A DNA stretch of 64,000 bases, taken from Pocillopora damicornis (lineage: Eukaryota). The stretch's first letter is position 1; each line of letters opens with the position of its first letter. The position numbers and the translations under genes are program-made. Positions 1 to 39,100 of the stretch are shown here, in pieces. The notes below the pieces were generated by a model. It searched no databases. It saw only the letters and a list, made by a program, of their open reading frames with translations, and had not been told where the DNA came from. The stretch covers positions 1-64,000 of the forward strand of contig NW_020847627.1 in NCBI RefSeq assembly GCF_003704095.1. Direction: 5' to 3'.

Positions 1-1014
1 ATCGAGTTTCTCGATTGTTTGGACGTTCCCCTTAGGATGACTGAGAATTCAGTGGTTGTCGCAGTTGGGGAATTTTTAAGAAAGTTTGAAGCTATCAGAT
101 GTGTTTCTATTTCGCGGTGTAATTTCACGTGCATTCTGCGTTACCATAACGGCCAGGCGTTTTTTTACATCACTCGTTTGGACCTGTATTGTAATGACCA
201 TGCTGACTTATTTGATGTCACCAACTTGACTTCCACTCCATCCCACTCCACAAGTTCGTCATCAGAGGGATTCTGTTTGAAATATCTAAGCTTTCTTCAC
301 GTTTATACAGATGGCAACGAGCGAACGATGAAATGTCTTGTTACCATTTTTAGAGATTGTAAGAATTTAAAAGATATTTCAATTCAGGGTGTTACTAAAC
401 GTACTTGTGAACTTCTTCGATATGTACCAAACCCCCGTACGTGTCGGGTACAGTTTCGTTTTTTCTCCTTTTTTCCTTTTCGCGAACCGTCGCTGACGTT
501 ATTCGACGTAATGAAGCTCGCTGGTTTGTTACCACAGTTTAAGAATCTCGTCTCCCTTGACCTTAACTTGAATAACTGTTGTGCTGAAGCAGTAAACAAA
601 CTGGTTTCTAGTATCACGCACAAGACTCTTGAGAAACTGGGACTGTGTGGCATTAAACTGACTCCAGTCACAGCCGCCGCGCTTGGTCGGTCAATTTCTG
701 AAATGTCGTCCTTACGTATGCTCTCGATATCTGGGCCGAGAAGAGGGTTTCTAGAAACAGGATTTGACAGAACATCTCTGGTTTCACAATTATTTACGTT
801 CAACACAGGAGGTTGTCGTTTCTTGCCCAGTTTGCATGAGTTATTTCTTGAGCGTTTAAATTTGAATGAACGGGGCTTACGTGAGCTGTTGGATAATTTG
901 AAATTCTTCTCAGAGCTGACACTCTTAAGCCTATATGGCAATCCACTGGGTGACGCGCACACGGTTCACTCTATGGTGAAAAAAGCACTGCCTCGGGTTC
1001 ATGTTTCTTATTGA
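1..1014 (+). CDS. C-terminal leucine-rich-repeat region of an NLR (NACHT-LRR)-like receptor; 5' end lies outside the window
   Basis: Frame 1 is open from base 1 (IEFLDCLDVP...) to TGA at 1012-1014. RI-like LRR units: LKYLSFLHV, LKDISIQG, LVSLDLNLNNC, LEKLGLCGIKLT, LRMLSISG, LHELFLERLNL, LTLLSLYGNPLG. No NACHT domain is visible in the window, so the NLR call is an inference. Confidence 0.7.
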   Translation: MEFLDCLDVPLRMTENSVVVAVGEFLRKFEAIRCVSISRCNFTCILRYHNGQAFFYITRLDLYCNDHADLFDVTNLTSTPSHSTSSSSEGFCLKYLSFLHVYTDGNERTMKCLVTIFRDCKNLKDISIQGVTKRTCELLRYVPNPRTCRVQFRFFSFFPFREPSLTLFDVMKLAGLLPQFKNLVSLDLNLNNCCAEAVNKLVSSITHKTLEKLGLCGIKLTPVTAAALGRSISEMSSLRMLSISGPRRGFLETGFDRTSLVSQLFTFNTGGCRFLPSLHELFLERLNLNERGLRELLDNLKFFSELTLLSLYGNPLGDAHTVHSMVKKALPRVHVSY

Positions 1015-6557: not shown

Positions 6558-9500
6558 ATGGAGTCAATTACCACGACTTGTCTTATTGATCTTGCCTTTG
6601 ACTTATCAGTTGATTGGAAAACGCTTGCACGTGTTCTTGGTCTTTCTGAAGAAGTATCAAGAATATGTGATGACTACAAACGGAATGTCTTCGAGCAAGC
6701 TTACCGAATGCTGCAAACTTGGAAACGAAGAAACGGATCCCAGGCTACTTATCAAGCCTTAGGTGAAGCACTTTCACACGATGTGGTGTCGCGTAATGAT
6801 TTGGCACAAAAATACTGTGCGGGAAGAAACAGGAGCTCTTTGGACGAAGGTAAGAGATTGAAATCGTTTCGAAGCTTATTGCACAGCGCAAAAAGAGCGG
6901 CGAAATTTACGAAGAACTTCGATTTCTTACAAGTTATTTAATTTCTTTTGAAATAATTGGCTCAGTGATTCTTGATTTTAACACCTGGAAGAATATATCG
7001 TGTTTGTTACGTCCTTTAGCAATGACTGAGTCGAAAACGAGACAGTTTTATCGATCATCCATTCGAGTGTGACCGACAACAGCGTTACATCTTTGGTAAT
7101 CAATCCGACGATTTCTGGGCATTATTATTCAGTTGTTTAAATAACAGACAGACAAACAAACATAACAAAAACGCTTTACATATTTGCGCCAGAATCATCA
7201 GATTTGTTTGTGTTGGGTCAAACTGATCCTCAATAGTGTGTATACTTTCGACTACATATTGTTACAGTACATTGCAATATTGAATTATTTCGAGGCAAAA
7301 GAGGAAACGAAGCCCTTCAAATTCTTCAGGTCACAGGTAGATCATATAACCCATTGAATTTGAGAAAGTGTGCCGTCGGTTATTATTATCACTCGTGTGA
7401 TTATTAATCTGTATCGTTCACTATTATTTTCAACGATCAATCTCAGCCTGATTTAATTGATCGCAGAGTGTCGTGTCACTTATTACGTGCCGTCTGTGTC
7501 CTATCAGTTATCGCCGTGTATAAGTGGTTTTGTGCGATGTAAAGCGATAGTATTCATACCGTAGGGGGGAGGGGGGGGGGAACTTAAGATAAGTCGTGGC
7601 CGGGGTTGTGCTGCTTTATTATTTTATCTCTGACCTTCTTCTGAGCGAAATACGGCCCTCGATTCAATTGTTTTGGGTTTCGGAATATCGACTCGTTCAG
7701 CCTCGTATAGCCTTTTCAGACAGAATTAGAAATAGGGTAATTTAGAATTATCAACCGAGTTGATAACGTAAATTGGCCGCCGTAAAGAGTTTAAAAGCGG
7801 ACGTTTCGAGCGTTAGCAATTCGTCCGAGCGATTGGAGGAATTATGACTTGTGTGTGGGTTTCTATTCAGAAAATGGAGCGACGCTCCGTAATCATCCTG
7901 GGCAGCATATGGCAGTTTGCGGCCTTTCCCTACATCTAGGCAGTTCGGAAAGCCGCAAAACTCTAGAACAAAAGTCAACGAGCGCTTTTCATTCAATTAA
8001 TTTATTCTTAGAGAGAGATGTTTTTTAGTCTTGTGACGAGCGTGGGACAAAGAAAAAAAAATTTTTTGAGTCAAGTGATTCTGATGATGACTTCCACTCA
8101 GGTTTTCGAAACGTCGGTCACCACTACGGACAACAGTCCTTCTCAGGGCTACACTTACCCGGTCGATCAAACTACACTATTACATGTAACTGAAATGTAG
8201 TACAACAGCTTGGCCGTGAAAGGTCTGGGTACGAGACTAGTCCCCTAAGCTCTCCTACACTATAAAGGATCTCAGGGTGAATACCGTCCTGAAAGGTTGT
8301 GTGTCTCGACAAAGTTCCTCATTTGCAGTCGTTCGTATTCTTCTCCATCCTTAGCCATCCAGAGAGGATGAGTGGTCTCTCGTAGCCTTGATTTTTTTTA
8401 TCCCCTCTTTCGTTGGGATTTTCTTTCCACTGATGTGCCATTTTGTCTGGGTTCCTTAGCTTCCAGTTCTGCAAGAAGAGCTACGCCTCATTGTCTCGTT
8501 TTTTTTTTCTCTCTCAACGCCTTGCAGGGATCGACCTTAAAGGACTCAAGACCGGCATGGTTACCATCGCTGACATGGTCTCCATTGCCAACAACTTTGG
8601 AAAAGAGTGGATGTGGGTCGGCCGACTTCTCGGGCTTGAAGACTCCTTGTTAGACGGCATCAAAGAGGATCTCTCACAAACTTACGAATGTACTTACAAA
8701 ATGCTCGAGTGGTGGTGTAAGAAAAAAGATTCTGACGCAACTTACGAGTGCCTTGCACGGGCGTTGTTACACAGAACAGTTGGCATGCGGGAAGTTGCTG
8801 AAAAATTCTGCGTGGACCACCGAGAAAAAAAGATCGGTATGTTCCAGTTGCTGAATGAAATAACAACCCTCAGTCTCAGAGAATATCAGAAAACAAGACA
8901 AAAAGATTGCTAGAGCCGGTTCAGTTGAGCATATCCATAAGACGCTAAGGAAAAGTAGAACCTTTGCCTTTATACCCAGTGTTAACATCTGTAATGTTTT
9001 TTTCTTTAATTTCATGTCAGCCACGTTAAGAAAACGCTAGCTGGAGAAAAAGAAGCTGATCCCTGATCACTTGAGTTTCAAACAGTTCGTTAGCGATTGC
9101 AACCACATTTAACGAAGTGGTGATATAGGTTGTTTTTGCGAGTGATCATCGGCTAGAGACTATAAACCGGCCAATATTGTCTTGTAAGAGACTATATTCT
9201 CTTGCGTCTTGTTATTGTTTTATTGATCGTGTCACTATTTAAAACATTCGGGATTTCCGGGTGTACTTTTACATGACCCCTAATACGAAACTATTCCTCC
9301 CAAGAGAGCCCCTGATAAAGTCTTAATTGCATGTAGTAGCTTACGTTTTTTCATTACTTAAATCAGCCTCTGCTGCACCTTCTGGAGAAGGAAACACACC
9401 AATAGATAAGAAATTGAAGAATTTGACCCTGAATGGTTCTACGGCATGTGAATTCGCGGGAAGCTATACCGAGGCGCCAGGCGCAACAGGAAACAAAAGC

Positions 9501-10551
9501 TTAGCAGGTAAGCTCAGTCTGGACTCGTGGCTCAGTACATTTCTTTACTTTAATCACTATTGTTAAAGAAGGCAGTGCAAAGAAGGTTTAAACTGCTGGT
9601 GATAGTACAGTGAAGTGGTTAAAAGTTTAATTAGCAGATGAATGATTGAAAAATGGTCTGTTATTGAAACCCAGGACCCAGGTTTGCAGTGGGAGGGAGG
9701 GTAGAGTAAGGTAAGCGGAGTTGCTGTTGTTGTTGATGTTTCTCCTCCCCGTATATTTGCTGTCCGCAAAGCAAAGATTTCCTTCACCTAACTTTGTTTA
9801 GCGATTAATTAGTACCTATCTAAAGTAAGCTGGAAATCTTCGTGGACAATTAAGGAGATGAGAGTAAGAAAATCTCACCCTCAGAGTCAAACGAACAGAT
9901 AGGAAACACACCCGTCCGCGTGACAGGTGCGTAATGTTCTGAACTACAAAGCGAGCGGGTCGGGTTTGACTACTTGATTTGGCTTTTCGAACTTCTTTCT
10001 CCCTCTGTGGTAAAGCATTTTATTCTTTCTTGGTCGGCAACTACCACGACGTAGGGTCGAAATGAAAAGGAAAGAGAAAATGTCTTCCCATGGAACAACA
10101 TTCAGCATGATTCATTTGACCCTCACTGTTAAGTTAGCAAAAGCAAGGAGAAGGAAAACGAGGTTTAGAAATAACTATCAACTGAAAGTATTATACGTTT
10201 AACTTATGACCAGGTACCACGCCACCCAGAGTTCCTGAGCCGGCTGATGATTGCATAACTAAGAACGTCATCACCATTCTGCCATACAAAGTGTGGAAAG
10301 AATTGGCCATTAAACTAGATCCCGAGCGTCCATTAGGAGGAGATTACAAAGATCTCGCTTGTGAGATGGGATATACTGTGGAGAAGATCTTGTATTTCCA
10401 GTCGAGGAATGGTCCTACGGAAGCCCTACTCACTGACTGCGCAAACTCAGTCTCAATTGACGAACTTTGTAACAAGTTGGAGGCGATTGGAAGATCTGAT
10501 GCAAAGATAGTGGTTGATGAATGGATCAAGAAAAAGACTACAAATGTGTAG
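6558..10551 (+). CDS. Triple death-domain protein (DD1-DD2-linker-DD3), 359 aa; exons 6558-6849, 8528-8836, 9367-9507, 10214-10551
   Basis: All introns are GT-AG and phase 1; the spliced ORF is 1080 nt. DD1: DWKTLARVLGL...EQAYRMLQTW...ATYQALGEAL. DD2: EWMWVGRLLGL...YKMLEWW...ATYECLARAL. DD3 is MyD88-like: LDPERPLGGDYKDLACEMGY...PTEALL...LEAIGRSDA. Confidence 0.85.
8076..8120 (+). ncRNA. Minimal type I hammerhead-ribozyme motif in a Penelope-like repeat remnant (about 8070-8185)
   Basis: TGATT-CTGATGA-T-GAC...TTC-GAAA-CGTC-GGTCA: core boxes present, stem I has G-U pairs, stem II is imperfect. Confidence 0.5.
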
Positions 10552-13171: not shown

Positions 13172-14614
13172 ATGGAGTCGATTACCACGACTTGTCTTAT
13201 CGATCTTGCCTTTGACTTATCAGACGATTGGAAAAAGCTTGCACATGTTCTTGGTCTTTCTGGAGAAGTATCAAGAATATGTGATGACTACAGACGGAAT
13301 GTCTTCGAACAAGCTTACCGAATGCTGCAAACTTGGAAAGGGAAAAAGGGATCTCAGGCTACTTATCAAGTCTTGCGTGAGGCCCTTGCACACGAAGCCG
13401 TATTGCGTAATGATTTGGTTCAAGAATACTTTGAGGGAAGAGACAGGAGCTGTTTGGACGAAGGTAGGAGATTGAAATCTTTTCGAAGCTTATTGTACAG
13501 CACCTCAAACAACAAGAGCGGCGACATTTACAGAGAACTTAGATTTCTTAGGAGGGATTTCATTTACTCAAGTAGCTGGTTCACTGATTCTTGATTCTGG
13601 CATCTGGAAGAATATATAGTACATGTTACCTCCTTGTGGATTGACTTAGACAGTTTTTACACTGATTCATTCAAGTGTGACTGTTAACAGCTTTAGATCT
13701 TTCGGTAAACAATGGGATGAAGTTGAGACATAAGTATTCGGATGTTTCACTAGCAAACAACCGAAACAAAACCAAAGCACGTCACAGATGTGCGCTGAAA
13801 ATTATCAGAGTTGTTAGCAGTCAAAATGGTACATACTTTTAAGTGAGTGATATCAAAGTAAAATGCAATATTTAATCGTTTCGAGGGGGAGGTGGACAGA
13901 AATCCTTGAGGGCCGGGGTAGGGGAGGATTTGGTCGTATTTCTGAGCTATTGCTAAGATTTTGATGATATAACGCGATGCAAAACCATAGTAAACCAAAA
14001 AAGGGACTAAACCACGAATGCAACACGAATGAAAGGGTAGCGAAAAAAAAAGAGTTAATAAACGTGCGTCTCAAAACTTTGCACATTTCCGGGCCGTTCC
14101 TTACAAAATAACAACGTAAAATCACTTAATTTTCCAGGCTGGTCGTTTGCAATCCGTTGAATCTCCTCCACCTTCAACTACCCTTGCGCCTTCTCTATTT
14201 ATCATGGCCTTTCTTTCTAAGGAACTAACATTTTGTTTGGGCTCACTCGGATTTAAGGTAGTTTTGTAACAATAGCCACTCACCCGGCTGTCTCGTTTGT
14301 TGTCTCAATACTTTACAGAGATCGACCTTGAAGGACTCAAGCCCGGGGTAGTTTCCAGCAGTGACTTACTCTCCATCGCCAAAGACTTAGGATTAAAGTG
14401 GGTCTGGATTGGTCGACTTCTCGGGTTGGAAGACTCCTTGTTAGATGGCATCAGAGAAGATCACATACAAGTCTCTGATTGTCAATACAAAATGCTCGAG
14501 TTATGGAGGAGGGAAAAGACTACTGGGGCAACCTACCAGTGCCTTGCAAGGGCGTTGCTGCACAGAACAGTTTGCATGCGAGATGTTGCTGAGAAATTCT
14601 GTGTGGAGAATTAA
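13172..14614 (+). CDS. Two-death-domain paralog (DD1-DD2, 195 aa) or recent pseudogene; exons 13172-13463, 14319-14614
   Basis: Paralogous to exons 1-2 of 6558-10551 with the same splice phase. TAA at 14612-14614 lies a few codons before the retained G|GTATGT donor. Confidence 0.7.
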
Positions 14615-15105
14615 GAAAAACAGATGGGTATGTTTCAGTCGTTGAATAATGAGATGAACTTAACTCTCGTATAAATTATTAAAAAACAAGAAAAAAAATT
14701 ATAGAACTGCATGTTTCATATCTATAGGGAGAGAAGAAAAAGAAGAACCTTTGCTGTGATAATCGAACCTAAAATTTGTACTATTCTTTCCTCGTAAGCC
14801 TCTTAAAAAAGTCGCTGGACTGAGTTATGTGAGAGATAGAGACTACATGTTTATATGTATATATGTAAATATGTTTTGACTCCCATTTCGCCGCGAGAAT
14901 TTGCCCATAAGTTCTGATTCTGAAAACAAGATACATGATAGATTTGTGGTGAAAGAATTGGAAGAGAAAAATAGTTTCTCATGAAACAACATCAGGCATG
15001 ATTCACAATTTTCTAAACAAAAAAGCCAGAAATTGAGACAAAAAACCTGAGACACTAATAGAGGATTAATCAATTAATCTTATTTTACGTTTGACGCATG
15101 ACCAG

Positions 15106-15727
15106 GTTCAACGCGAAGAAACTGATGGATGAATGGATCAAGTCACAAGATTGCCAATAGGCAGCCTGCAATATTTCGATCTACCGCTTTCTTTTGTGGC
15201 ATGGGGATACAGAAAATCCTAGAAAGAAAAGAACAATTCTCAAAAATATGTCCCAGGGATAGCGAGCAAGCCAGAAATATATTTAATCATTGATTTTCTT
15301 GACGATGAAAAAAATGTTTGAGCAGTAGATTTCACTAAAAAGAGTTTAGAAAACGAAGCGTTGTTAATAGATAATCGATATATCCACCTGTGTTCCTTTT
15401 TTTCGAAAGACTAATGTATGTCACAATCATGAATACTAATTTATAATTGTATTCGAGTAAAGGAATTTTTGTTACTCTGTACGCCGTGAATTTGAAGAAT
15501 AGAAGCTTGTACGTTGCTTGAGTTTGGTCAGCTTGTTATTACGGTGTTCTAATAACTGATCAAGCAGCCTACGCGAATGTACTTATAAAATGCTCGAGTT
15601 GTCGTGCAAGAAAGGGGAATGCTAACGCAACATACAAGAGCCTTGCACAGACGTTATTAAACAGAGCAATTTGCATGCGAGAAGTTGCTGAGAAATTCTG
15701 CGTGGACCACTGAGGAAAAGAGATCGG
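15106..15727 (+). pseudogene. Death-domain exon remnants: internally deleted DD3 exon (15106-15180) and 3' part of a DD2 exon (15568-15727)
   Basis: The atgaccag|GT acceptor jumps to DEWIKSQDCQ*AACNI. The DD2 piece reads ECTYKMLEL...MREVAEKFCVDH* with a frameshift and a stop. Confidence 0.8.
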
Positions 15728-16393
15728 TATATTCCAGTTGTTGAATGAAATAATGACCCTCAGTCTCAGAGAATATCAGAAAACACTCAAGACAAAGGAT
15801 TGCAAGAGCCGGTTCAGTTGCGCATATCTACAAGGCGCTAAGGAAAAGTAGAGCGTTTGCCTTTATAACCAGCGTTAACATCTGTGATGTTTTTTCTTGA
15901 AATTTTACGCCAGCCACGTTGAGAAAACGCTAGTTGGAGAAAAAAAATCTGATCCTTGATCAGTTAAGTTAGTGATTGCAAACGCATTTAACGAAGTGGT
16001 GATATAGATCGTTTTTGCGATGAATCATTGGCCAGAGACTATTAACCGGCCAACGTTGTCTTGCAAGAGATTATAATCTCTTGTGTTTTGATATTGCAAA
16101 TCAATTGAGTGACTGCAGCCTTTCGAATAAAGTTACGATAAAGATTAATTTTGTATGGCTATTAGCCAGAGTTTATGAACTGAACAATATTGTTCAGAAA
16201 ACCCAAATACTTGGCAAACAGGCGTCTTTTGGCTTCTAAATCCGGTTTGCAAGACGTTGATACTAGCAGGTTTTGACTCACATTTCGCCGCTAGAATTTA
16301 CATATAAATTTAAATTCTGAAAACAAGATACATAATAAGTTTGTGGTGACTCCCAAATGTATTCCAGTCGTATTTAGGCGTTGCACATATATG

Positions 16394-20730: not shown

Positions 20731-22340
20731 AAAAGCAGCTCCACAGGCACCAACAAGAAAGTTAATGCTTCTTCGAACCGTTGTGCCTTACTTCTAGCTG
20801 TAAGCTGTGTGCAAGAGACAAGGGCTGTAGTTATTTTTCTATAATCGTTAAATTGCTACGTAAAGAACTTTTCATAATGTTACCTTACTTTTACCAATTA
20901 TTGCATTCGATCCTCATTACTTCGGAGACAGCGCAGTCATGCATGCCAGCATCAATCGAACGAATGGACCGTTCTTGTACATGACGTGAGGTTCGCGCTG
21001 GAGATTGGTCTCAACAAATATTGTTAGTCAATTGAAAAAAAAAAACAAAAAAACGTGCAACAATTAAAACAACAACGGTGACCACAAAACAAACAAATAT
21101 AACGTAACTCTTCAATTTAGCGCCCTCCTTCCATAAAGTGCCCCCTCGCTAATAAACGCCTCCCTCGAATTTGGTTTTTGTTAATAACCGCCCCTATTCG
21201 ACCTACTCTAATAAGCGCCCCCTAACGAGTGAGCACCTCATTCCAATACGCACCTCTTTTCCAATAAACGCCCCTATTCTGTTTCAGTAATAAGACTAGT
21301 AGGGTACATGAACATTGAGATTAATCGTGGTCCATCTTCCTTTAATTCACTCACTTAAAACCTCACGACAAAAAAAAGAGAACTTCGTCTGTCTCTCAAT
21401 TATTATGTCGCCGCGAGGGCATAGTTCCTTCCAATGGAAGATCCCGTCTTAAAATTTTGCGACGGTTGCTTGGATAGACATCTTAGCAAGGAAGTATCCC
21501 GGTACAGCAAGTCTGTCTCCCAGTCTTTTCTTTCCTTTTGGATAAACATCAAAAGTTTGTTTCACATTCTGCTGTTTTTCAAAGGAGAAATAAGCGCCCT
21601 GTCCCTCATAAACGCCCTGTTTCGAATAAGCCCCCTCCCCTGAGGTAACAGCAGTGAAATAAGCGTCCCGGGCGCTAAATCGGATCAGTACGGCACATAT
21701 ATGTGCAACGCCTAAATACGACTGGAATACATTTGGGAGTCACCACAAACTTATTATGTATCTTGTTTTCAGAATTAAATTTATATGCAAATTCTAGCGG
21801 CGAAATGTGAGTCAAAACCGGCTAGTATCAACGTCTTGCAAAATGGATTTAGAAAGCCAAAAAACGGCCTGTTTATCAAGCATTTGGGTTTTCTGAACAA
21901 CATTGTTTAGTTCCCAAACTCTGGCTAATAGCCACACAAAATTAATCTTTATCGTAACTTTATTCGAAAGGCGGCAGTCGCTCAATTGATTTGCAATATC
22001 AAGACACAAGAGAATATAATCTCTTACAAGATAATGTTGGCCGTTATATAGTCTCTAGCCGATGATTCATCGCAAAAACGATCTATATCACCACTTCGTT
22101 AAATGTGTTTGCAATCGCTAACGAACCGTTCGAAACTCAACTGATCAAGGATCAGTTTCTTTTTCTTCAAATAGATCACAGATGTTAACGCTGGTTATAA
22201 AGGCAAACGCTCTACTTTTCCTTAGCGCCTTGTGGATATGCGCAAATGCTCAACTGAACCTGCTCTAGCAATCCTTTTGTCTTGAGTGTTTTCTGATATT
22301 CTCAGAGACTGAGGGTCATTGTTTCATTCAACAACTGGAA

Positions 22341-23185
22341 CATATCGATCTCTTTCTCTCAGTGGTCCACGCAGAATTTCTCAGCAACTTCGCGCATGCA
22401 AACTGCTCTGTGTTATAACGTCTGTGCAAGGCTCTTGTAAGTTGCGTTGGCATTCCTCTTTCTTGCACAACAACTCGAGCATTTTATAAGTACATTCGCG
22501 TAGGCTAGGTTGTTGATTTAAGGAACGCTCTGTTATATAATGGTTTATTTGTTCCCTAAGCCCAGCACCATAAAAATGACCTTCATTAGGCTATGGCTCT
22601 GTTTTAGTGGCCACACTATACATTCGACACTCAGAACAATTCTTCTGTGGGGAGCCAATGTAAGGCCTGGGCAACCGGGAGCCGAAAATTGATAAGCTGT
22701 AACGATGCATTTTAAAAGTATTTCTTGGGTGCTTGATCAGTTATTAGAGCACTGTAATAGCAAGCTGACCAAACTCCAGCAACGTACAAGCTTCTATTCT
22801 TCAAATCCACGGCGAACAGAGTGAAAACAATTCCTCTGCTCGACTACAATTATAGATTAATATTCATGATTGTGACATAAATTAGTCTTTCGAAAAAAAG
22901 GGAAAAAGGTGGATATATCGATTATCTATTAACAACGCTTCATTTTCTTAACTCTTATTAGTCAAATCTACTGCTCAAACACTTTTTTCTTTGTTGAATA
23001 AATCAATGATTAAATATATTTCTGGCCTACTCGCTATCCATGGGATAAATTTTTGAGAATTGTTCTTTTCTTTCTAGGATTTTCTGTATCCCCATACCAC
23101 ACAAAAAAGCGGTAGATCGAAATATTGCAGGCTGCACACTAGCAATCTTGTGACTTGATCCATCAGTTTCTTTGCGTTGAACCTG
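22341..23185 (-). pseudogene. Mirror copies of the DD2 fragment (22341-22504) and the DD3 remnant (about 23117-23185)
   Basis: Reverse complement of the 15106-15727 region; reads IKSQDC*CAACNI and MREVAEKFCVDH*. Confidence 0.75.
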
Positions 23186-24073
23186 GTCATGCGTCAAACG
23201 TAAAATAAGATTAATTGATGGTAATTTTTAATCCTTTATTGGTGTCTCGGGTTTTTTGTCTCAATTTCTGGCTTCTTTTGTTTACTGTAGAAAAAACATG
23301 TGACAAAACAGTGAGTCATGTCTGATGTTGTTTCATGAGAAAATATTTTTCTCTTCCTATTCTTTCACCACAAATCTATCATGTATCTTGTTTTCAGAAT
23401 CAGAGCTTATAGCCAAGTTCTCGCGGCGAAATGTGATTCAAAACCTGCTAGTATCAATGTCTTGCAAAATGTTTGGGTTTCTCGTAGTGAAAAGTTCTAA
23501 AAACAAATTTTTCTTCTCTTTTTTTGGTGCATTCGACATTTCTTGAGTGCGAACCTAATACTAAGGTGTTCCAGCTTGGGCTAAAAAAAATTGCATTGTG
23601 AAGTATTCTTCGGTTACATACTTATTCACTTCTTTGGTGCCTCATCAGATTGTCGAACTGTACAAGATCCCAAAACCTGTAAGAATCCGGTTTTTAACTC
23701 GGGTCTCTACTGAGTGGTAACAATGCAAACAAGTTTCAAGCAGTAAACCTATCTTTGTAAACCTATCTGTTACAATGTTAAGTATACTAAAGAGGTGCAC
23801 TCGGGTCATGGTCACCATGAATCATTAAAATGAAATAACGAAACCGCTTACTTAAAGATATAAGTGAAAAGCTAAATTTTCTGAAATAATTTTCACAAAA
23901 ATTGGTGACGAGTAATTGAAATCTTCAGCCCAAACAACCTTTTGTTTATTTAATTAAAAGCTCTACTCCGAGTTGCTCGCTGGAATTTTTTTTCTTTTTA
24001 AACATTCCCAGCCCCAACCCCCTCCCTCCTAAAAGAAAAACTTGTTGGCGTGCGTATAGTAGCTCTGGCTGTT

Positions 24074-24413
24074 GCAGGTTACACATTTGCAGTTTCGTCA
24101 CTTGATCCATTCATCAAGCACTTTCCTTGCATCAGATCTTCCAATCGCCTTCAGCTTGTCACAAAGTTTGTCAATTGAGACTGAGTTTGCGCAGTCATTG
24201 AGTTGAGCTTCTGTTAGATCTTTCCCAACTGGAAATACAAGATTTTCTCCATGTCATATCCAATTTCACTGGCGAGATCTTTGTAATCTCCTCCTAATTG
24301 GCGCAAGGGATCTAATTTAATGATCAATTCTCTCCACACTTTGTAGGGCAGAACGGTGATAACGTTCTCAGTTATGCAATCAGTCGGCTCAGGAACTCTG
24401 GGTGGCGTAGTAC
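24074..24413 (-). pseudogene. DD3 (MyD88-like death domain) exon pseudogene
   Basis: Homologous to 10214-10551; 1-nt deletion after ILYFQ; ends DEWIK*RNCKCVTC. Confidence 0.85.
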
Positions 24414-31855: not shown

Positions 31856-32198
31856 GTACTACGCCACCTAGAGTTCCTGAGCCGGCTGATGATTGCATAA
31901 CTAAGAACGTCGTCACCATTCTGCCGTACAAAGTGTGGAGAGAATTGATCATTAAATTAGATCCCTTGCGCCAATTAGGAGGAGATTACAAAGATCTCAC
32001 CAGTGAAATGGGATATGACGTGGAGAAAATCTTGTATTTCCAATCGGGAAAGATCTAACAGAGGCCCAACTCATTGACTGCGCAAACTCAGTCTCAATTG
32101 ACAAACTTTGTAACAAGCTGAAGGCGATTGGAAGATCTGATGCAAGGAAAGTGCTTGATGAATGGATCAAGTGACGGAACTGCGAATGTGCAACCTGC
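31856..32198 (+). pseudogene. DD3 exon pseudogene
   Basis: TTPPRVPEPADDCITKNVVTILPYKVWRELIIKLDPLRQLGGDYKDL..., 1-nt deletion near 32045, ends DEWIK*RNCECATC. Confidence 0.88.
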
Positions 32199-32902
32199 AT
32201 CAGCTGGAGCCACTATGCGCACGCCAACAAGTATTTCTTTTTTAAGGAGGGAGGGGGTGGGGGTGGGAATGTCATAAAAAGAAAAAAATTCCAGCGAGCA
32301 ACTCAGGAGTAGAGCTTTTATTTAAATAAACAAGTTGTTTGGGCTGAAGATTTCAATTACTCGTCACCAATTTTTGTGAATATTATTTCAGAAAATTTAG
32401 CTTTTCACTTGTTTCTTTAGGTAAGCAGTTTCGTTATTTGATTTTAATGATTCATGGAGACCATGACCCGAATGCAGCTCTTTAGTGAACATACTATTGT
32501 GACAGGTAGGTTTGGAAACCTGCTTGAAACTTGTTTGCATTGTTACCACTCAGTAGAGACCCGAGTTAAAACCGGATTCTTACATGTTTTGAGATCTTGT
32601 ACAGTTCGACAACCTGATGAGGCACCAAAGAAAAGACACAAGCTGTTCCAACAGCTTGCAGAGTTCAGTGACACGAAGTAGAGTTTAGTGACATGAAAGT
32701 AAATAAGTACGTAACCGAATAATAATACGATGGAAGCGCATTAAAGAAACGTTAAAATCAAGGATTGCGTAGCTGCAGTTGGGGACTATCCCTTCCTTTC
32801 ACCCCAAAAACTTGTCACCCCTTCAAAATCGTGCTCCTCACACAGAGGCCTGGAAACAAGGATAGTTGTCAGTTCACTTCGTCCAAAGAGAGGAAGGCAG
32901 AA

Positions 32903-35900
32903 ATGACTTCCCAGAGGAACGAACAAGAGAACTTGCGGACTTCGATTTTCTCGATCGAATTATCTAAAGGTCCGCGCTCTCCTCCTATGAGGAAAGGAAC
33001 AGCCTTCACAGTGAAACTGGATGGATCATTTTCAACCTATTTGATGACTAGTTGCTCAGTGGTTGAACGAAGTGGAGCAACTTCCTCAAGCCGGCTAACT
33101 TGTAAGCGATTTGGTCAGTCTCTTCCGGAGGAGAAACATCCTATAAACCCAGATTCAGCAGAATCTACAAAAATGGAAGAATTCTGCTTTATTCCTTACG
33201 AATCGCCTTCGAACTTAAAATTAATCAGCGCCGATAAGCTGTGCAAAGAGGGAGAAATGATGACGCGGAAGTCTACTTGCAAATCATTTACATTCTTAGG
33301 AAATTCCTTCACCATCATGACTTGGGAATTCAAAAATGATGAAGAGACTTATGTTTTAACCGGAATTGATTCTGATGTGGAGCTTGTTGCGAGTTCTTGC
33401 AGGGGATCGCCTGTAGTTTCCATCGACGATCTACGGACGGTTATTGGAGTGGTGACCTGCTCGTCAAACGGAGACCTTGAATTGCTCTTCCTCGAAGCAA
33501 ACTCTCTACGTGAAATAGAAGGTAGGGATGTGCTTTAATGTAATTCTTAATGTTAATTCTTAGGGAAAATCCCCCTTTGAAATTTCCTGTGAGGTCTTCA
33601 GTGACAATGAAATATATGGTTTGAATTTTTTGGTTCCTTCGACTTCAATCCATCCTCCCCAGTCAGTGTGATGCTTGGCTGGCTGGCGGCGAAGGTACGT
33701 TAGTTGTAAACTTACGGTCGTTCTTTGACTTTTGTATGCAACCACATTAATCGAGAACAGGGAGTCACACTTATCTGAAGGCTTCTCTCAAAATGGTTCA
33801 GGTAGCGGTACAAAATTTTCGCCTACTTGCAGGGAAAAACAAATGCAACATAAGTTATGGTTAAAAGCAACTGGAACGAATAAAGTTTTGAAGTTAAGTA
33901 GCCTACTTAAAAACTATCTAGTGTTTGGCTAATAAATTTACAATATTGGGATAATTTTATCAAAACTTATCAAAACCATGCTGACTTTATCGATGATTAT
34001 CATTCTAGGACAACTTAAAGCCAGATGTTCAGATGACAGTGGAATTGATGTTGCAGACTCTCCCTTAATTGTACGTGGTCCACCATCATCTGCGTCTGCC
34101 CGTCATCAACGAAATACACATCCAGGTACAGTTTTCGCTGTGCTAGTAGAGCTAAGTTTACGATCACACACTTAATGAATTCAGTGAATAATTTTAGTTA
34201 AGCTATACTGAAAAAGGTCAATATCACGGAAGGAAAACGACAATATATGTATATATATATACATGTTAATTCGTCCAAATATACTCCAGTTATTTACGTA
34301 AATATGACCAGTTCAGTTGGGCCTAAATAATTATTCTCCTCCCTGAGCCTTTTTACAGTCTTTACCCTGGGAAGTAGTATTTCATTGCGAGTTTTATTGA
34401 GCTAGACAAATAACACTCTGGGATCTATTCGTAAACAGAAACCAAAGCAGAGAGAAGTTTTTTTTATTTTGATTGTATTGAAAGATGTTAAGATTGATTT
34501 TAACGCTGAGATAGTAGATTTAGATGACATTAAATGTTGGTAGAGTGCCTAAAGAAAGTTTACAGATCACTCTTCTTTTGCTTTTGGCTTACAAGATCTT
34601 CGAGATGTGTACTTATGCAGCAACATAAGGCAGTTTAATTGATATGAAGTGCATACAAATGCTTTGGGTTTGTAGATGTACAAAAAGATAGCTTTTTGAC
34701 CAATCAGACTGTACATGATACCTTATCTATATTGTAAATGCTTACACATCAAGATGACTATCAAAATATTGAAGCTTATATCTGCAATTAGACCTATAGG
34801 GGTATTAAAATGAAACTTGATTTTTAATATCACATTTAATTTGTGGCAACCCAGCAAACAGAAATCTTAATTTCCCTTTAGTGTGCAAAATAGTTTTCAG
34901 ATCTGATATTTTAAAAATACAAGGACTGTGGTGGTTCAGATTTGTTAACAGTGAATAATATTCTTACAATAATATTCTTGTTACAGTAAATATGTGTCAT
35001 AGCATTCAGGAACAATATTCATGCTCAAATGCTACATTCTTGTGAATAAATTGTGCTTGCTTGATTTGAAGGAAACCTGGTAGTTAATTTCTAGCACCCA
35101 TGTAATTGTTCTTAGTAATTTAAACTTAGTAATTACTGTCTTTTTACATACCAATACACAGAAGATACTGGAACTAATGCCCAAACATCATCTGAAGGTT
35201 TAGAAAAACGTCTATCACATGTGTCAGTTCAGGGTAAGAATTTCACATGTATTTCTTACTAGGACACTGATCCTCCATTAGAGATTTTTTCAACTGAGCT
35301 ACCTGCAGATTTAGCAATTTGGTAGTGTTTGATCTGTATGCATTTCTTAGAAGAAGGCTGGTCTTTCATCACAGATTTTCTGTAACTGTGCTACCTGCTG
35401 ATTTATTTAGCATATAAGTGGTGGTATTTGATCTGTTCCCCTTTTAGGATTTGAATAGGTCACAGAGAACCTGGAAAGTCTCAGAATTTCATTGTATTAT
35501 CAACTAGGCTTGGGAAGTCATGGAATTGCAGTTTTGGTCATGGAATATCAAGGGAAATGTCTTTCTGTGAACTTCAAATTTTGTCTATGGAAATCCTTTA
35601 CTTTGTACAATTGTTGTCACTCCCCTGACACTTATTGAAAGCAAGGTTTTCCTGTAGCTGAATAATTAAATAAATGATACAATTAATTTAACACAGGATT
35701 TTCTTGACATCTAGAGACAACTCCACATACAACACAGACTTCCTCCCATGAAAGTAAACCTGAAAAGATCAGATGCATTTGGGATGAACAGGTGTCATCT
35801 TTGAAATCTTCTCAAGATTTGATGAATGATTTGAAGTTACATCTGGACCCAAAGAGGGATCTTGGTGGAGATTATTGTTCATTAGCAAGTGCATTTGGAA

Positions 35901-36100
35901 AAAACATGAAGTATATATGGTATTTGGATTCAAGACCGAGTCCTGTTGAACATTTGATACGAGATTACTGTGCGACTTTAAGACAGCTTGAAAGGGCATT
36001 AATTAGTCCTATGGTCAACCGAGGAGATGTTTCAGACATAGTTAAGGAGTGGGTTGAAAAAGAGGGTTGTCACTGTGAAGAATGTGGTGGTATTCGTTAG
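32903..36100 (+). CDS. Trypsin-like (pseudo)protease - linker - MyD88-like death domain - CxCxxC protein, 397 aa; exons 32903-33521, 34009-34125, 35162-35233, 35715-36100
   Basis: All introns are GT-AG and phase 1; the ORF is 1194 nt. Trypsin_2-like motif order: GTAF, YLMTSCSVV, EEFCFI, SCRGSPVV, VIGVV. DD: LDPKRDLGGDYCSLASAFG...SPVEHLI...NRGDVSDIVKEW. Tail: CHCEEC. Confidence 0.8.
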
Positions 36101-39100
36101 GGTTTGATCTAATTTGCAGGTGTTATTTCTTTCTACTTATTTCCAAGATTCTACAGTTTGCCTGTGGGTGAGTAAACCACATTTTTTGATAAAGTGGAAC
36201 ACTAGATTTCTTCTGGAATCACAGGAAATTACACCAGTCCTATAGATAAGGCCAAATTGATATTTCCAAAGTTGACAGTTTTGTCACTTGGAAGTGGAAG
36301 TTGCCGAATTAAGCAAGGAAAAGGTACTTTATGACCAATTATCCATTTAACCCACAATGTTGTCAGTAATAATTAAAACATTTAACTGCTAGTCAAGATA
36401 GTTTTGCAAACTTAAACAAATGATTTAAAAGAAATGAGTGCAGTAAGAAGTTAGTATTTGTGATAGCCTTTGGGACTGGTTATCATTTCACAGGTGTCAA
36501 AACTCAACTTTAGCTCCTGTAGAGTTTAACAGATAAAATGATTGCTAAAAAGTAGATACGATAAAGATGATTACTAATACAGTGATATAATCTGTCCTTG
36601 AGAAGGATATTCCCAATGTTGGAAAAACCAGGAAATCACTTCCTTTTCATCTAACATACATGTTGTCACTGTACCTTTAAACCTCATAGATATTTAATTT
36701 ACCTTACTGACCAAAGTAGAGGTGAATAATGGTGGATATTTACCGAGCTGAGAAGCCGCAAGGTGAATATCAACCACTTTCTCGAACACTTGGGTGAATA
36801 ATTGTTTTAGTATATACCACACAGATACCAAAAAATTAGTTTTAATAATTTCTTTCAATATACTGATGCATTGCCTTACTTTTTACTTGCACAAATTTGT
36901 CAAAACTGTGGCCAGTGCAGTTGCAGAGCTCAAAGTATAGATGAAAAACAACAATGCAAGGGATAATGATGAATGTAATTTTTTAGTGTCTTTAAAAGAT
37001 GAAGCAAGAAGGTGTAGCTTATGTTTAATCCACTTTATCTTTAACAGATGTCTTGAAATATGCTGCACTATAAGTGTTTTTAGGCATGTATTTTTGCTAA
37101 GTATTTATAGTTCTATACTTATTTTATTCTCTGTAAATTAGGAATGAGGGTAAATATTGTTGTGAAACTATTAAAAATTATCTAGTAGGTACCTGAATAT
37201 TTTTAAGTTCAATGGAGTATTTTTTTTTATTCTGGCAGTAAGTGAATAAGTTCAGTACTGCTCATCTGTTTACTTTGTGGCTCACCAAAACCACTGCTAG
37301 CAGAAACTATTAGAAAGTAATTGCTTTTAGTAAAGTAACCAAGACACTGTATCTTCAGAGTAGTCACTTAATATGGTGAACCAGAAATTTGACTCATATT
37401 AGGTAGCAATTACGGCAAACAAAGTTTTCAGTTGTTGTAATTGTTGTTTTTTGTAATGATAGCATAACAATCTTCTTAGGTTGTTGGGTGGAACTCTCAA
37501 AAATATTTTATGTGCTTTATGCATCAATCAATTTGATGCTTCAAATTGAAAAAAGGACATGGTCAGTTTTACCAACAAGAAGAGATCTCAACACAAAGAT
37601 GAACTGTAACACTAAACTTTATTATTCACAAAATTGTCTTCATAATAAATAGTTTGATAGAAGTCTCTCAAAAAATAATTTGTCATACAATGTGATGGTC
37701 TGAAAGATTCCCTATCAAACAAATCTTGTGGTAACTGTAACAGTATAAAATAAATATCTCAATTGGGATAGATTTCTCAATATTTTTTAAAGTATCTTTG
37801 CAAATAGAAACATACATCTCAGAATTATATTATCATAACATCCGTTAACACAATGCAACAAGAACTACTATAATGGCAGTTTTATAATTTGTGTGAGAAG
37901 GCCTCTGACCACTATGAATGTAAATATCAATTCACTGAATGTTAATCGCTGACAGATACTAAAATGTGTCAAAAGGACAAGTATTGTTGAGATCAGTAGC
38001 CGAGAGGAAGCATTTCTGTCCTTTTCCTTTATAGCGCTTTAACACCCAAGATCTGATTGTTAATCCTCCCTTCAAGCTGCTACATATTTAGTTGTAAATA
38101 AGTCATGAGAATTTGATTAAAGATCAAGATAACTTCTACCTGGTAAGTTTCAGTATTCTCATTACCTGTTTGCTGGATAGTGTTCAGATATTATAGGGAG
38201 AAGATACAAGTGTTTAATATTTTGGTCTGATTCTTTCACTGCTGTCTTGCCACCTAATAAATTACCATGAGTTTACCAAACTGAAATTGTTTTCAATGTA
38301 TCACATGCATAATTTGTCCAGAGCCAGATGGGTATCAAAATATTGTGACATCTGTTAGTTACCTATTTCCCACATGGGTTGATAGAAAGAATGGTTTTAA
38401 TTAAGTGGACAGGCTCCATTGCGTAGTTTCTCCTAGGAAACAAATGGCGTACTAAAATACATCTTGGTAATCAAAACGTGAACTTTAAATGAAGAATAAG
38501 GTACAACAATAAGTACCACATCAACAACAACAGCCATAGCAAAGCTTTGTTGATTGCACGTGCAACACAGATATACAACAAACATCTTATGTAGCCCCTT
38601 AATTAAGGGATGTTTTTGGTCAAACACACTTGCAAAAGTAAGCATGCGGTAGGGTTTGCTGAGCGGTCAGTCGGTCAAAATCATCTGTGTCAAGCAAGTC
38701 ACCAAGAACAGCCAACAGATCTGCATCCTGCCACAAAATAGAGCACATGATCACTCAGGAAACTCCTCCTCTCTTCATGACACACCCAATGTTCTGGTAA
38801 GGGAGAGAGAGTGTTGCATGACCACAACAAAAAGTGGCTGCAAAGGAGACTGCACAAAAAGACAGGAAATCATGCAGGAAAATAGGGCAGTTCATCCAAG
38901 TTTGGGAGAAAGATCTTTGGTGCTCTAAAGGAGTACCTCTGATGGCACCTCATGTTTGTGGGATATTTTGGGGTTCATCAAGAAATTTTCATGCCCGAGC
39001 AATGAAAAAAATGCTATAAACCTAACACAATCAGAGGAGTCAAGTGAAGCATCTATGAAAGAATTACATTAAATTTTGAAAAGATAAAATCGCAAGAAAT

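Follow-up and report, generated by a model that had tools for sequence, protein, structure and literature searches.

A predicted trypsin-fold domain without a catalytic triad, spliced to a death domain in the coral Pocillopora damicornis

Proteins that join a death-fold adaptor to a protease-shaped domain include cFLIP, caspase-8/10, and the MALT1 paracaspase; the protease-shaped domain of cFLIP is inactive, and MALT1 additionally has Ig domains. Furthermore, effectors in which a bacterial death-like domain (bDLD), i.e., an adaptor of the death superfamily, is combined with a trypsin-like peptidase have been described in conflict systems (Kaur et al. 2021, PMC8195603), a premise on which the first-pass annotation of the locus studied here had relied and which the literature supports. 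The gene in question is located at positions 32903-36100 of a 64,000-nucleotide stretch (the window) from the coral Pocillopora damicornis (NCBI RefSeq assembly GCF_003704095.1, contig NW_020847627.1, positions 1 to 64,000 of the forward strand), and combines a predicted trypsin-fold domain encoded by exon 1 (the head) with a death domain encoded by exon 4. The results presented below suggest that it specifies an expressed, cytosolic protein of 397 amino acids (aa), in which the catalytically dead head probably acts as a binding or scaffold module, recruited by the death domain into the assemblies of a local gene cluster. A coral fusion of a trypsin-like domain or a pseudo-protease with a death domain was not described in the literature searched, a weak negative with subscription journals outside the coverage.

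The exon 1 domain and the loss of its catalytic triad

To evaluate the fold of the head, its structure was modeled with AlphaFold2 from exon 1 and an 18-sequence alignment, yielding a predicted local distance difference test score (pLDDT) of 86.5 and a predicted template modeling score (pTM) of 0.86, with pLDDT values between 84.8 and 86.5 for the five models; the run on the single sequence reached a pLDDT of 35 and was unusable. Foldseek comparison with the PDB retrieved HtrA1, HtrA3, hepatitis A 3C, MamO, DegP, and MucD (E between about 1e-6 and 1e-5, template modeling (TM) scores of 0.5-0.6). VIA-align, which is independent of Foldseek, reported 114 chains with Z ≥ 8, the top 50 all being of the trypsin fold, and the best matches were the trypsin-like domain of IgA1 protease (Z 14.8), HtrA3 (14.0), Deg2 (13.4), and the S1C domain of RsgI9 (13.4). 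Protein-language-model features computed from the single sequence pointed to the Trypsin_2, S1, S39, and S29 clusters (score 0.98, the ten best in one clan). These approaches agree on the trypsin double beta-barrel that had been proposed initially, and exon 1 is accordingly assigned this fold, as far as a predicted model allows. All five motifs listed in the first-pass annotation were found in the protein beginning at ATG 32903, namely, GTAF (residues 32-35), YLMTSCSVV (46-54), EEFCFI (92-97), SSCRGSPVV (164-172), and VIGVV (180-184).

Database searches, which were run exon by exon, gave no Pfam match for exon 1 at E ≤ 10, none for any of the other three exons, and none for the 18 members of the exon 1 family at E ≤ 1. 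The PDB sequence search with exon 1 returned spurious summed matches to WD40 repeats only, and the PDB profile search with the family recovered no protease, just a chance match to coronavirus nsp1 (E 1.2). Eight close relatives with 61-99% identity were the only proteins detected by the word-index search, and when 1.84 billion representatives were searched with a profile built from six orthologues, 20 proteins were obtained at E ≤ 0.001, 12 of them full-length and 19-41% identical, with no bacterial relatives. None of these relatives is named, and nearly all are gene calls of approximately 210-230 aa ending soon after a conserved Gly, a layout matching exon 1 (single exon, phase-1 end). Close orthologues were located on TARA coral metagenome scaffolds. 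Within the own genome (234.35 Mb, 4393 contigs), no paralogue was found by the single-sequence search, and the profile search revealed three divergent paralogues, all residing on contig C3982 (Table 1). As judged from these searches, the exon 1 family is unannotated, featuring neither a Pfam model nor a named homologue.

The canonical triad is replaced in this protein, as had been stated, by Ser52, Glu93, and Arg167 at the His, Asp, and Ser positions, respectively, the Asp assignment being less certain, as global hhalign placed it at Asn104 instead of Glu93. Among 21 family members, including the three paralogues, the His-position column contains D, E, S, A, K, Q, or G and never His, the Asp-position column contains E, Q, D, N, H, I, S, G, T, or K, and the nucleophile column is occupied by Arg in seven members and by Ala, Val, or Leu in the other 14. 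In this set, conservation stays below 85% in every His, Asp, Glu, Cys, or Lys column, and among the Ser residues partial conservation is limited to Ser169 (G-S-P motif), kept in 18 members and replaced by Ala in three. The invariant columns of the 18-sequence alignment are limited to Met1, Gly32, Ala34, Leu47, Thr49, Gly168, Pro170, and Gly182. The triad is missing in all 12 full-length distant relatives aligned as well as in the three own-genome paralogues. Because no catalytic column is conserved across the members, catalysis is concluded to have been lost anciently and family-wide, so that the whole family is predicted to be inactive.

A second, independent dead trypsin-like protein was observed elsewhere in the own genome (locus L014, C3577:438855-439292, + strand). 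Its 504-aa open reading frame (ORF) matches Pfam Trypsin_2 and keeps His and Asp, with a nucleophile motif reading G-N-Y-G-S-P (Ser to Tyr).

Gene structure, transcripts, and the death domain

The gene model deduced from genomic and RNA sequences is summarized in Table 1. All three introns are of phase 1 and have GT..AG ends. The corresponding splice joints, 33519/34007 (cut +2), 34122/35159 (+3), and 35232/35714 (+1), were recovered in Logan RNA contigs from four runs representing four studies, the support being pooled over the runs, not all of which contain all three joints. The runs containing the locus are labeled coral metagenome or marine metatranscriptome and represent poly-A RNA. Hence, exon 1 is spliced to the death-domain exon, as the fusion proposed in the first-pass annotation implied. 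An in-frame stop occurs just upstream of position 32765 and one RNA contig runs unspliced over 32270-33519, indicating that no in-frame start precedes ATG 32903; the position of this ATG is shared with the orthologues. On visual inspection, a signal peptide is absent, the N-terminus being hydrophilic with a helix predicted at residues 2-12. The linker between head and death domain comprises approximately 90 residues and is rich in Ser, Thr, and Pro. Furthermore, a 2.8-kb RNA contig of a related coral (L002/P0005, 369 aa) carries head, linker, and death domain in a single open frame, and the exon order is conserved in scaffolds L033, L034, and L003.

Protein P0026 (275 aa), considered as a longer isoform, was rejected, being merely an ORF call extended upstream. 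Approximately 40 extra bases at 35030/35031 (intron 2) were seen in low-depth contigs of three RNA runs and represent an indel polymorphism or a colony or species difference. Within 36787-36842, many RNA contigs of all four runs are interrupted, and their loose ends differ on either side, pointing to a dispersed repeat located in the 3' untranslated region (UTR) or directly behind it.

Exon 4 alone matched neither Pfam nor the PDB. A profile of 11 relatives (A5) compared with solved death domains matched p75NTR (E 8.7e-5), NRADD (E 0.002), and MyD88 (E 0.0034), followed by weaker matches to UNC5 and RIPK1; the MyD88 match spans profile positions 20-102, i.e., nearly the whole death domain. Of the 11 exon 4 relatives, five matched the Pfam Death family (PF00531; best E 1.1e-11) and one matched bDLD3 weakly (E 0.1). 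By these profile matches, exon 4 is identified as a divergent death domain. Its previous description as MyD88-like is retained in so far as a death domain is present and MyD88 is matched, but the resemblance is not specific, since p75NTR and NRADD rank ahead and a TIR domain is lacking. The Cys-x-Cys-x-x-Cys tail and one upstream Cys are kept in most orthologues. The closest exon 4 paralogue in the own genome is the third death-domain-like exon of a neighboring gene (10291-10539; E 6e-9, 37% identity).

Table 1. Coordinates of the gene, the putative catalytic positions, the exon 1 paralogues, and the neighboring exons (positions in the window unless another contig is named).
Feature	Position	Strand	Details
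Gene, four exons	32903-36100	+	1194 nt = 397 codons + stop; RNA-supported
5' UTR, minimum extent	32270..32902	+	RNA contigs colinear with genome: run X1 32270-33519, run X8 from 32404
Exon 1, residues 1-206 and first base of codon 207	32903..33521	+	Entire predicted trypsin-fold pseudo-protease domain
Ser52 codon, catalytic-His position	33056..33058	+	LTSCSVV aligned to LT..HV of triad-bearing own-genome Trypsin_2 genes
Glu93 codon, probable catalytic-Asp position	33179..33181	+	Opens strand 94-99, by order strand six of barrel 1
Cys166 and Arg167 codons; Arg167 = nucleophile-Ser position	33398..33403	+	CRGSPVV vs NSGSPVV / CSGGPV (hhalign, hmmsearch)
Exon 2, Ser/Pro-rich linker, phase 1-1	34009..34125	+	RNA-contig joints; order kept in scaffolds L033, L034 and RNA contig L002
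Exon 3, linker, phase 1-1	35162..35233	+	RNA-contig joints; tblastn matches in L033 and L034
Exon 4, linker end, death domain (~35774-36058), Cys-x-Cys-x-x-Cys tail (36068-36085), TAG stop	35715..36100	+	
3' UTR, minimum extent	36101..36749	+	X1 record 4 = 35714-36749; X12 record 13 = 35714-37500; contigs of two runs reach 37500
Exon 1 paralogues, G000 contig C3982	181355-182005; 187754-188356; 195880-196479	+; -; -	Loci L027, L026; clustered within 15 kb
Pfam Death exons	6558; 8443; 13172		E 8e-13 to 1e-8
Further death-domain-like exons	10291-10539; 14288-15803; 22287-24393	third: -	
LRR-like exon	19-1014		

Genomic neighborhood, partner modules, and selection

The window is AT-rich (GC 0.32-0.43), and the gene sits in a cluster of death-domain exons (Table 1). 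The regions 6558-10539 and 13172-15803 (+ strand) and 22287-24393 (- strand) represent tandem genes or relics consisting of death-domain exons only, of two subtypes, and the second death-domain-only copy contains stops in the frame of 14288-14695. A frameshifted death-domain exon of the 10291-10539 subtype was found 730 bp upstream of the ATG (31933-32046 and 32031-32171, + strand); the same split occurs in a related coral scaffold (L034:1567-1674 / 1670-1783), suggesting an ancient relic common to both, and 32000-32183 has no coverage in the four RNA runs. On the same scaffold, L034:1-69 holds the end of a second death-domain-exon copy, 87% identical to exon 4 residues 104-126 and located approximately 6 kb upstream of the orthologue, which suggests a tandem duplicate in the related coral. 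In another species (L003), too, there is linkage to the gene with three death domains. The contig under study carries no Trypsin_2 gene, and at least ten Trypsin_2 matches were obtained on other contigs of the own genome. At the far end of the window, 62379-63182 (- strand) encodes a 267-aa ORF resembling part of a seven-transmembrane receptor and adjoins a masked run of N at approximately 63.2 kb.

The domains following homologous first exons were found to vary. Two FN3 exons and no death domain lie downstream of each minus-strand paralogue on C3982, and the ORFs located downstream on the same strand in other scaffolds matched Pfam Death (L008, L029, and also L003), FN3 (L009, L030), or, in three ORFs, Ig I-set (L031). 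In a maximum-likelihood tree, the death-domain-linked members fall on one side of a branch with support of 96/95. A first exon ending in phase 1 and followed by varied domains suggests a portable binding module that was spread by exon shuffling.

Selection was assessed by the Nei-Gojobori method on five orthologous copies. Rough pairwise ratios of nonsynonymous to synonymous substitution rates (dN/dS) for exon 1 were between 0.27 and 0.56 in the ten pairs, at synonymous divergences (dS) of 0.15-0.9. The head is under purifying selection, yet it evolves fairly fast. For exon 4, dN/dS ranged from 0.17 to 1.5, the death domain being looser among close species.

Proposed function and comparison with known systems

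We consider it probable that the protein serves as a non-cleaving binder or scaffold. Its head retains the protease shape, including the conserved G-S-P-V-V and V-V-G-V-V strands, which in real proteases line the substrate groove, and a head shaped in this way may bind a peptide or protein partner without cleavage. The death domain would carry the head into homotypic death-domain assemblies, and the neighboring death-domain-only proteins would be the likeliest partners, since exon 4 has its nearest paralogue in one of them, namely, in the third death domain (10291-10539). While the dead head and the splicing to the death domain follow from the data described above, the binding function is what we infer from them.

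Several points weigh against this interpretation. Comparison by hhalign with the Trypsin_2 domains of the own genome gave a homology probability of only 5-6%, which is not significant; hence, the fold assignment depends on a model built from a shallow alignment, and the analysis is considered to establish, at the level of this model, the fold alone and not descent from the Trypsin_2 family. The triad positions derive from motifs and the order of strands rather than from a structural superposition, with ambiguity for the Asp. Moreover, the architectures outside the window were deduced from same-strand proximity and not from RNA, and the fast evolution of the death-domain exon implies that partner specificity may differ between species.

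Among the alternatives, the one that survives best is a decoy or sensor, in which the head mimics a host protease and its binding by a pathogen inhibitor or effector triggers oligomerization of the death domain (integrated-decoy logic). The position of the gene within a death-domain-only cluster with an LRR exon, the dN/dS values of approximately 0.3-0.55, fairly fast for a folded domain, and the lineage-restricted and patchy family are consistent with it, as are the bacterial trypsin/death-like fusions operating in conflict systems (PMC8195603); however, no pathogen ligand is known and the FN3- and Ig-linked relatives fit a death-signaling decoy poorly. Overall, this alternative is rather unlikely. 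More broadly, the family might be a cnidarian invention turning a decatalyzed protease fold into a portable intracellular recognition head, whose death-domain branch would be an integrated decoy or sensor for a pathogen inhibitor or effector, or for a damage-exposed self peptide, nucleating a signalosome together with the neighboring death-domain-only adaptors. This is a speculative proposal to which we likewise assign a low probability. If it were true, the bacterial trypsin/death-like conflict systems would have a parallel in animals.

A cFLIP-like regulator, in which the catalytically dead domain would partner an active trypsin-like protease to modulate or inhibit it while the death domain positions the pair in a signaling complex, is similarly improbable. 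Pseudo-enzyme regulators of death-fold complexes are a generally known principle (cFLIP, caspase-8), and several large single-exon Trypsin_2 genes of the genome keep His, Asp, and Ser, one of them with an identical G-S-P-V-V after the Ser. However, these active genes have no Pfam death domain and all lie off this contig, and the profile searches of the whole library and of the own genome yielded dead members only, without an active close paralogue. Consequently, the allosteric partnership with an active paralogue suggested in the first-pass annotation was not borne out, the inactivity being family-wide, which differs from the situation of cFLIP.

Cys166, located one residue before the nucleophile position, had also been noted in the first-pass annotation; as a potential nucleophile it was rejected, since its conservation is limited to the closest clade (7/21 sequences). 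An enzyme using some non-canonical site (e.g., Cys166, Cys51, or Ser169 of G-S-P) is very unlikely, for although the orthologues of this group have Cys51 and Cys166 next to the positions of His and Ser, and Ser169 is frequent in the family, Cys51 is unconserved too, Ser169 is exchanged for Ala in some members, and no His or other general base is conserved family-wide. Hardly any weight is given to a decaying or functionless young gene with a protease-like shape as a relic, an idea favored by the missing Pfam family, the narrow distribution, the frameshifted relic just upstream (31933-32171), and the death-domain dN/dS of 1.5 in one pair, and opposed by the intact frame of five species-level copies, head dN/dS values under 0.6 in 10/10 pairs with dS up to 0.9, poly-A RNA in four studies, and structural motifs kept in family members down to 22% identity.

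Regarded as a binding module, the head provides a testable entry point, namely, its ligand and the clustered death-domain-only genes as partners. The death-domain repertoires of corals are very large and poorly understood, with links to immunity, to symbiosis, and to the cell death associated with bleaching, and the gene defines a family of predicted trypsin-fold pseudo-enzymes wired to death-domain, FN3, or Ig modules. From a methodological perspective, fold prediction from shallow alignments can place orphan coral exons.

Compared to HtrA/DegP-type and other PA-clan proteases (Trypsin_2, S1), the head shares the predicted double beta-barrel, the motif order, and the C-terminal helix (Z 12-14.8, TM approximately 0.6), and it retains the G-x-P-V and V-G-V strands. 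In contrast to them, the coral protein has no His/Asp/Ser triad, no significant profile match, and no PDZ domain, and is presumably cytosolic with a death domain attached. In the trypsin-fold pseudo-proteases, i.e., the MamO protease domain, the HGF beta-chain, protein Z, the scabies mite SMIPPs, and RsgI9 S1C, catalysis is likewise lost or degenerate and the fold is reused for binding. Several of them were also present among the VIA-align matches (5hm9, Z 13.0; 1si5, Z 12.2; 3f1s, Z 12.1; 3h7o, Z 11.9; 7sjy, Z 13.4). Whereas these proteins are mostly extracellular or periplasmic S1 members recognizable by sequence, the coral family is a sequence orphan, probably intracellular, with modules of the death-domain, FN3, or Ig type attached.

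Regarding the death domain, the gene is not a MyD88 orthologue and stops right after this domain. The bDLD/trypsin effectors differ in being predicted active and in carrying their adaptor at the N-terminus, whereas the coral head is dead and its metazoan-type death domain C-terminal. With cFLIP, caspase-8/10, and MALT1, the coral protein has the combination of a death-fold adaptor and a protease-shaped domain in common; the latter is of the caspase fold there and of the trypsin fold here, and the close active paralogue of cFLIP has no counterpart in the searches of this study. To the pseudo-enzymes of death-fold signaling, so far dominated by the caspase fold, the gene adds a case with a predicted trypsin fold.

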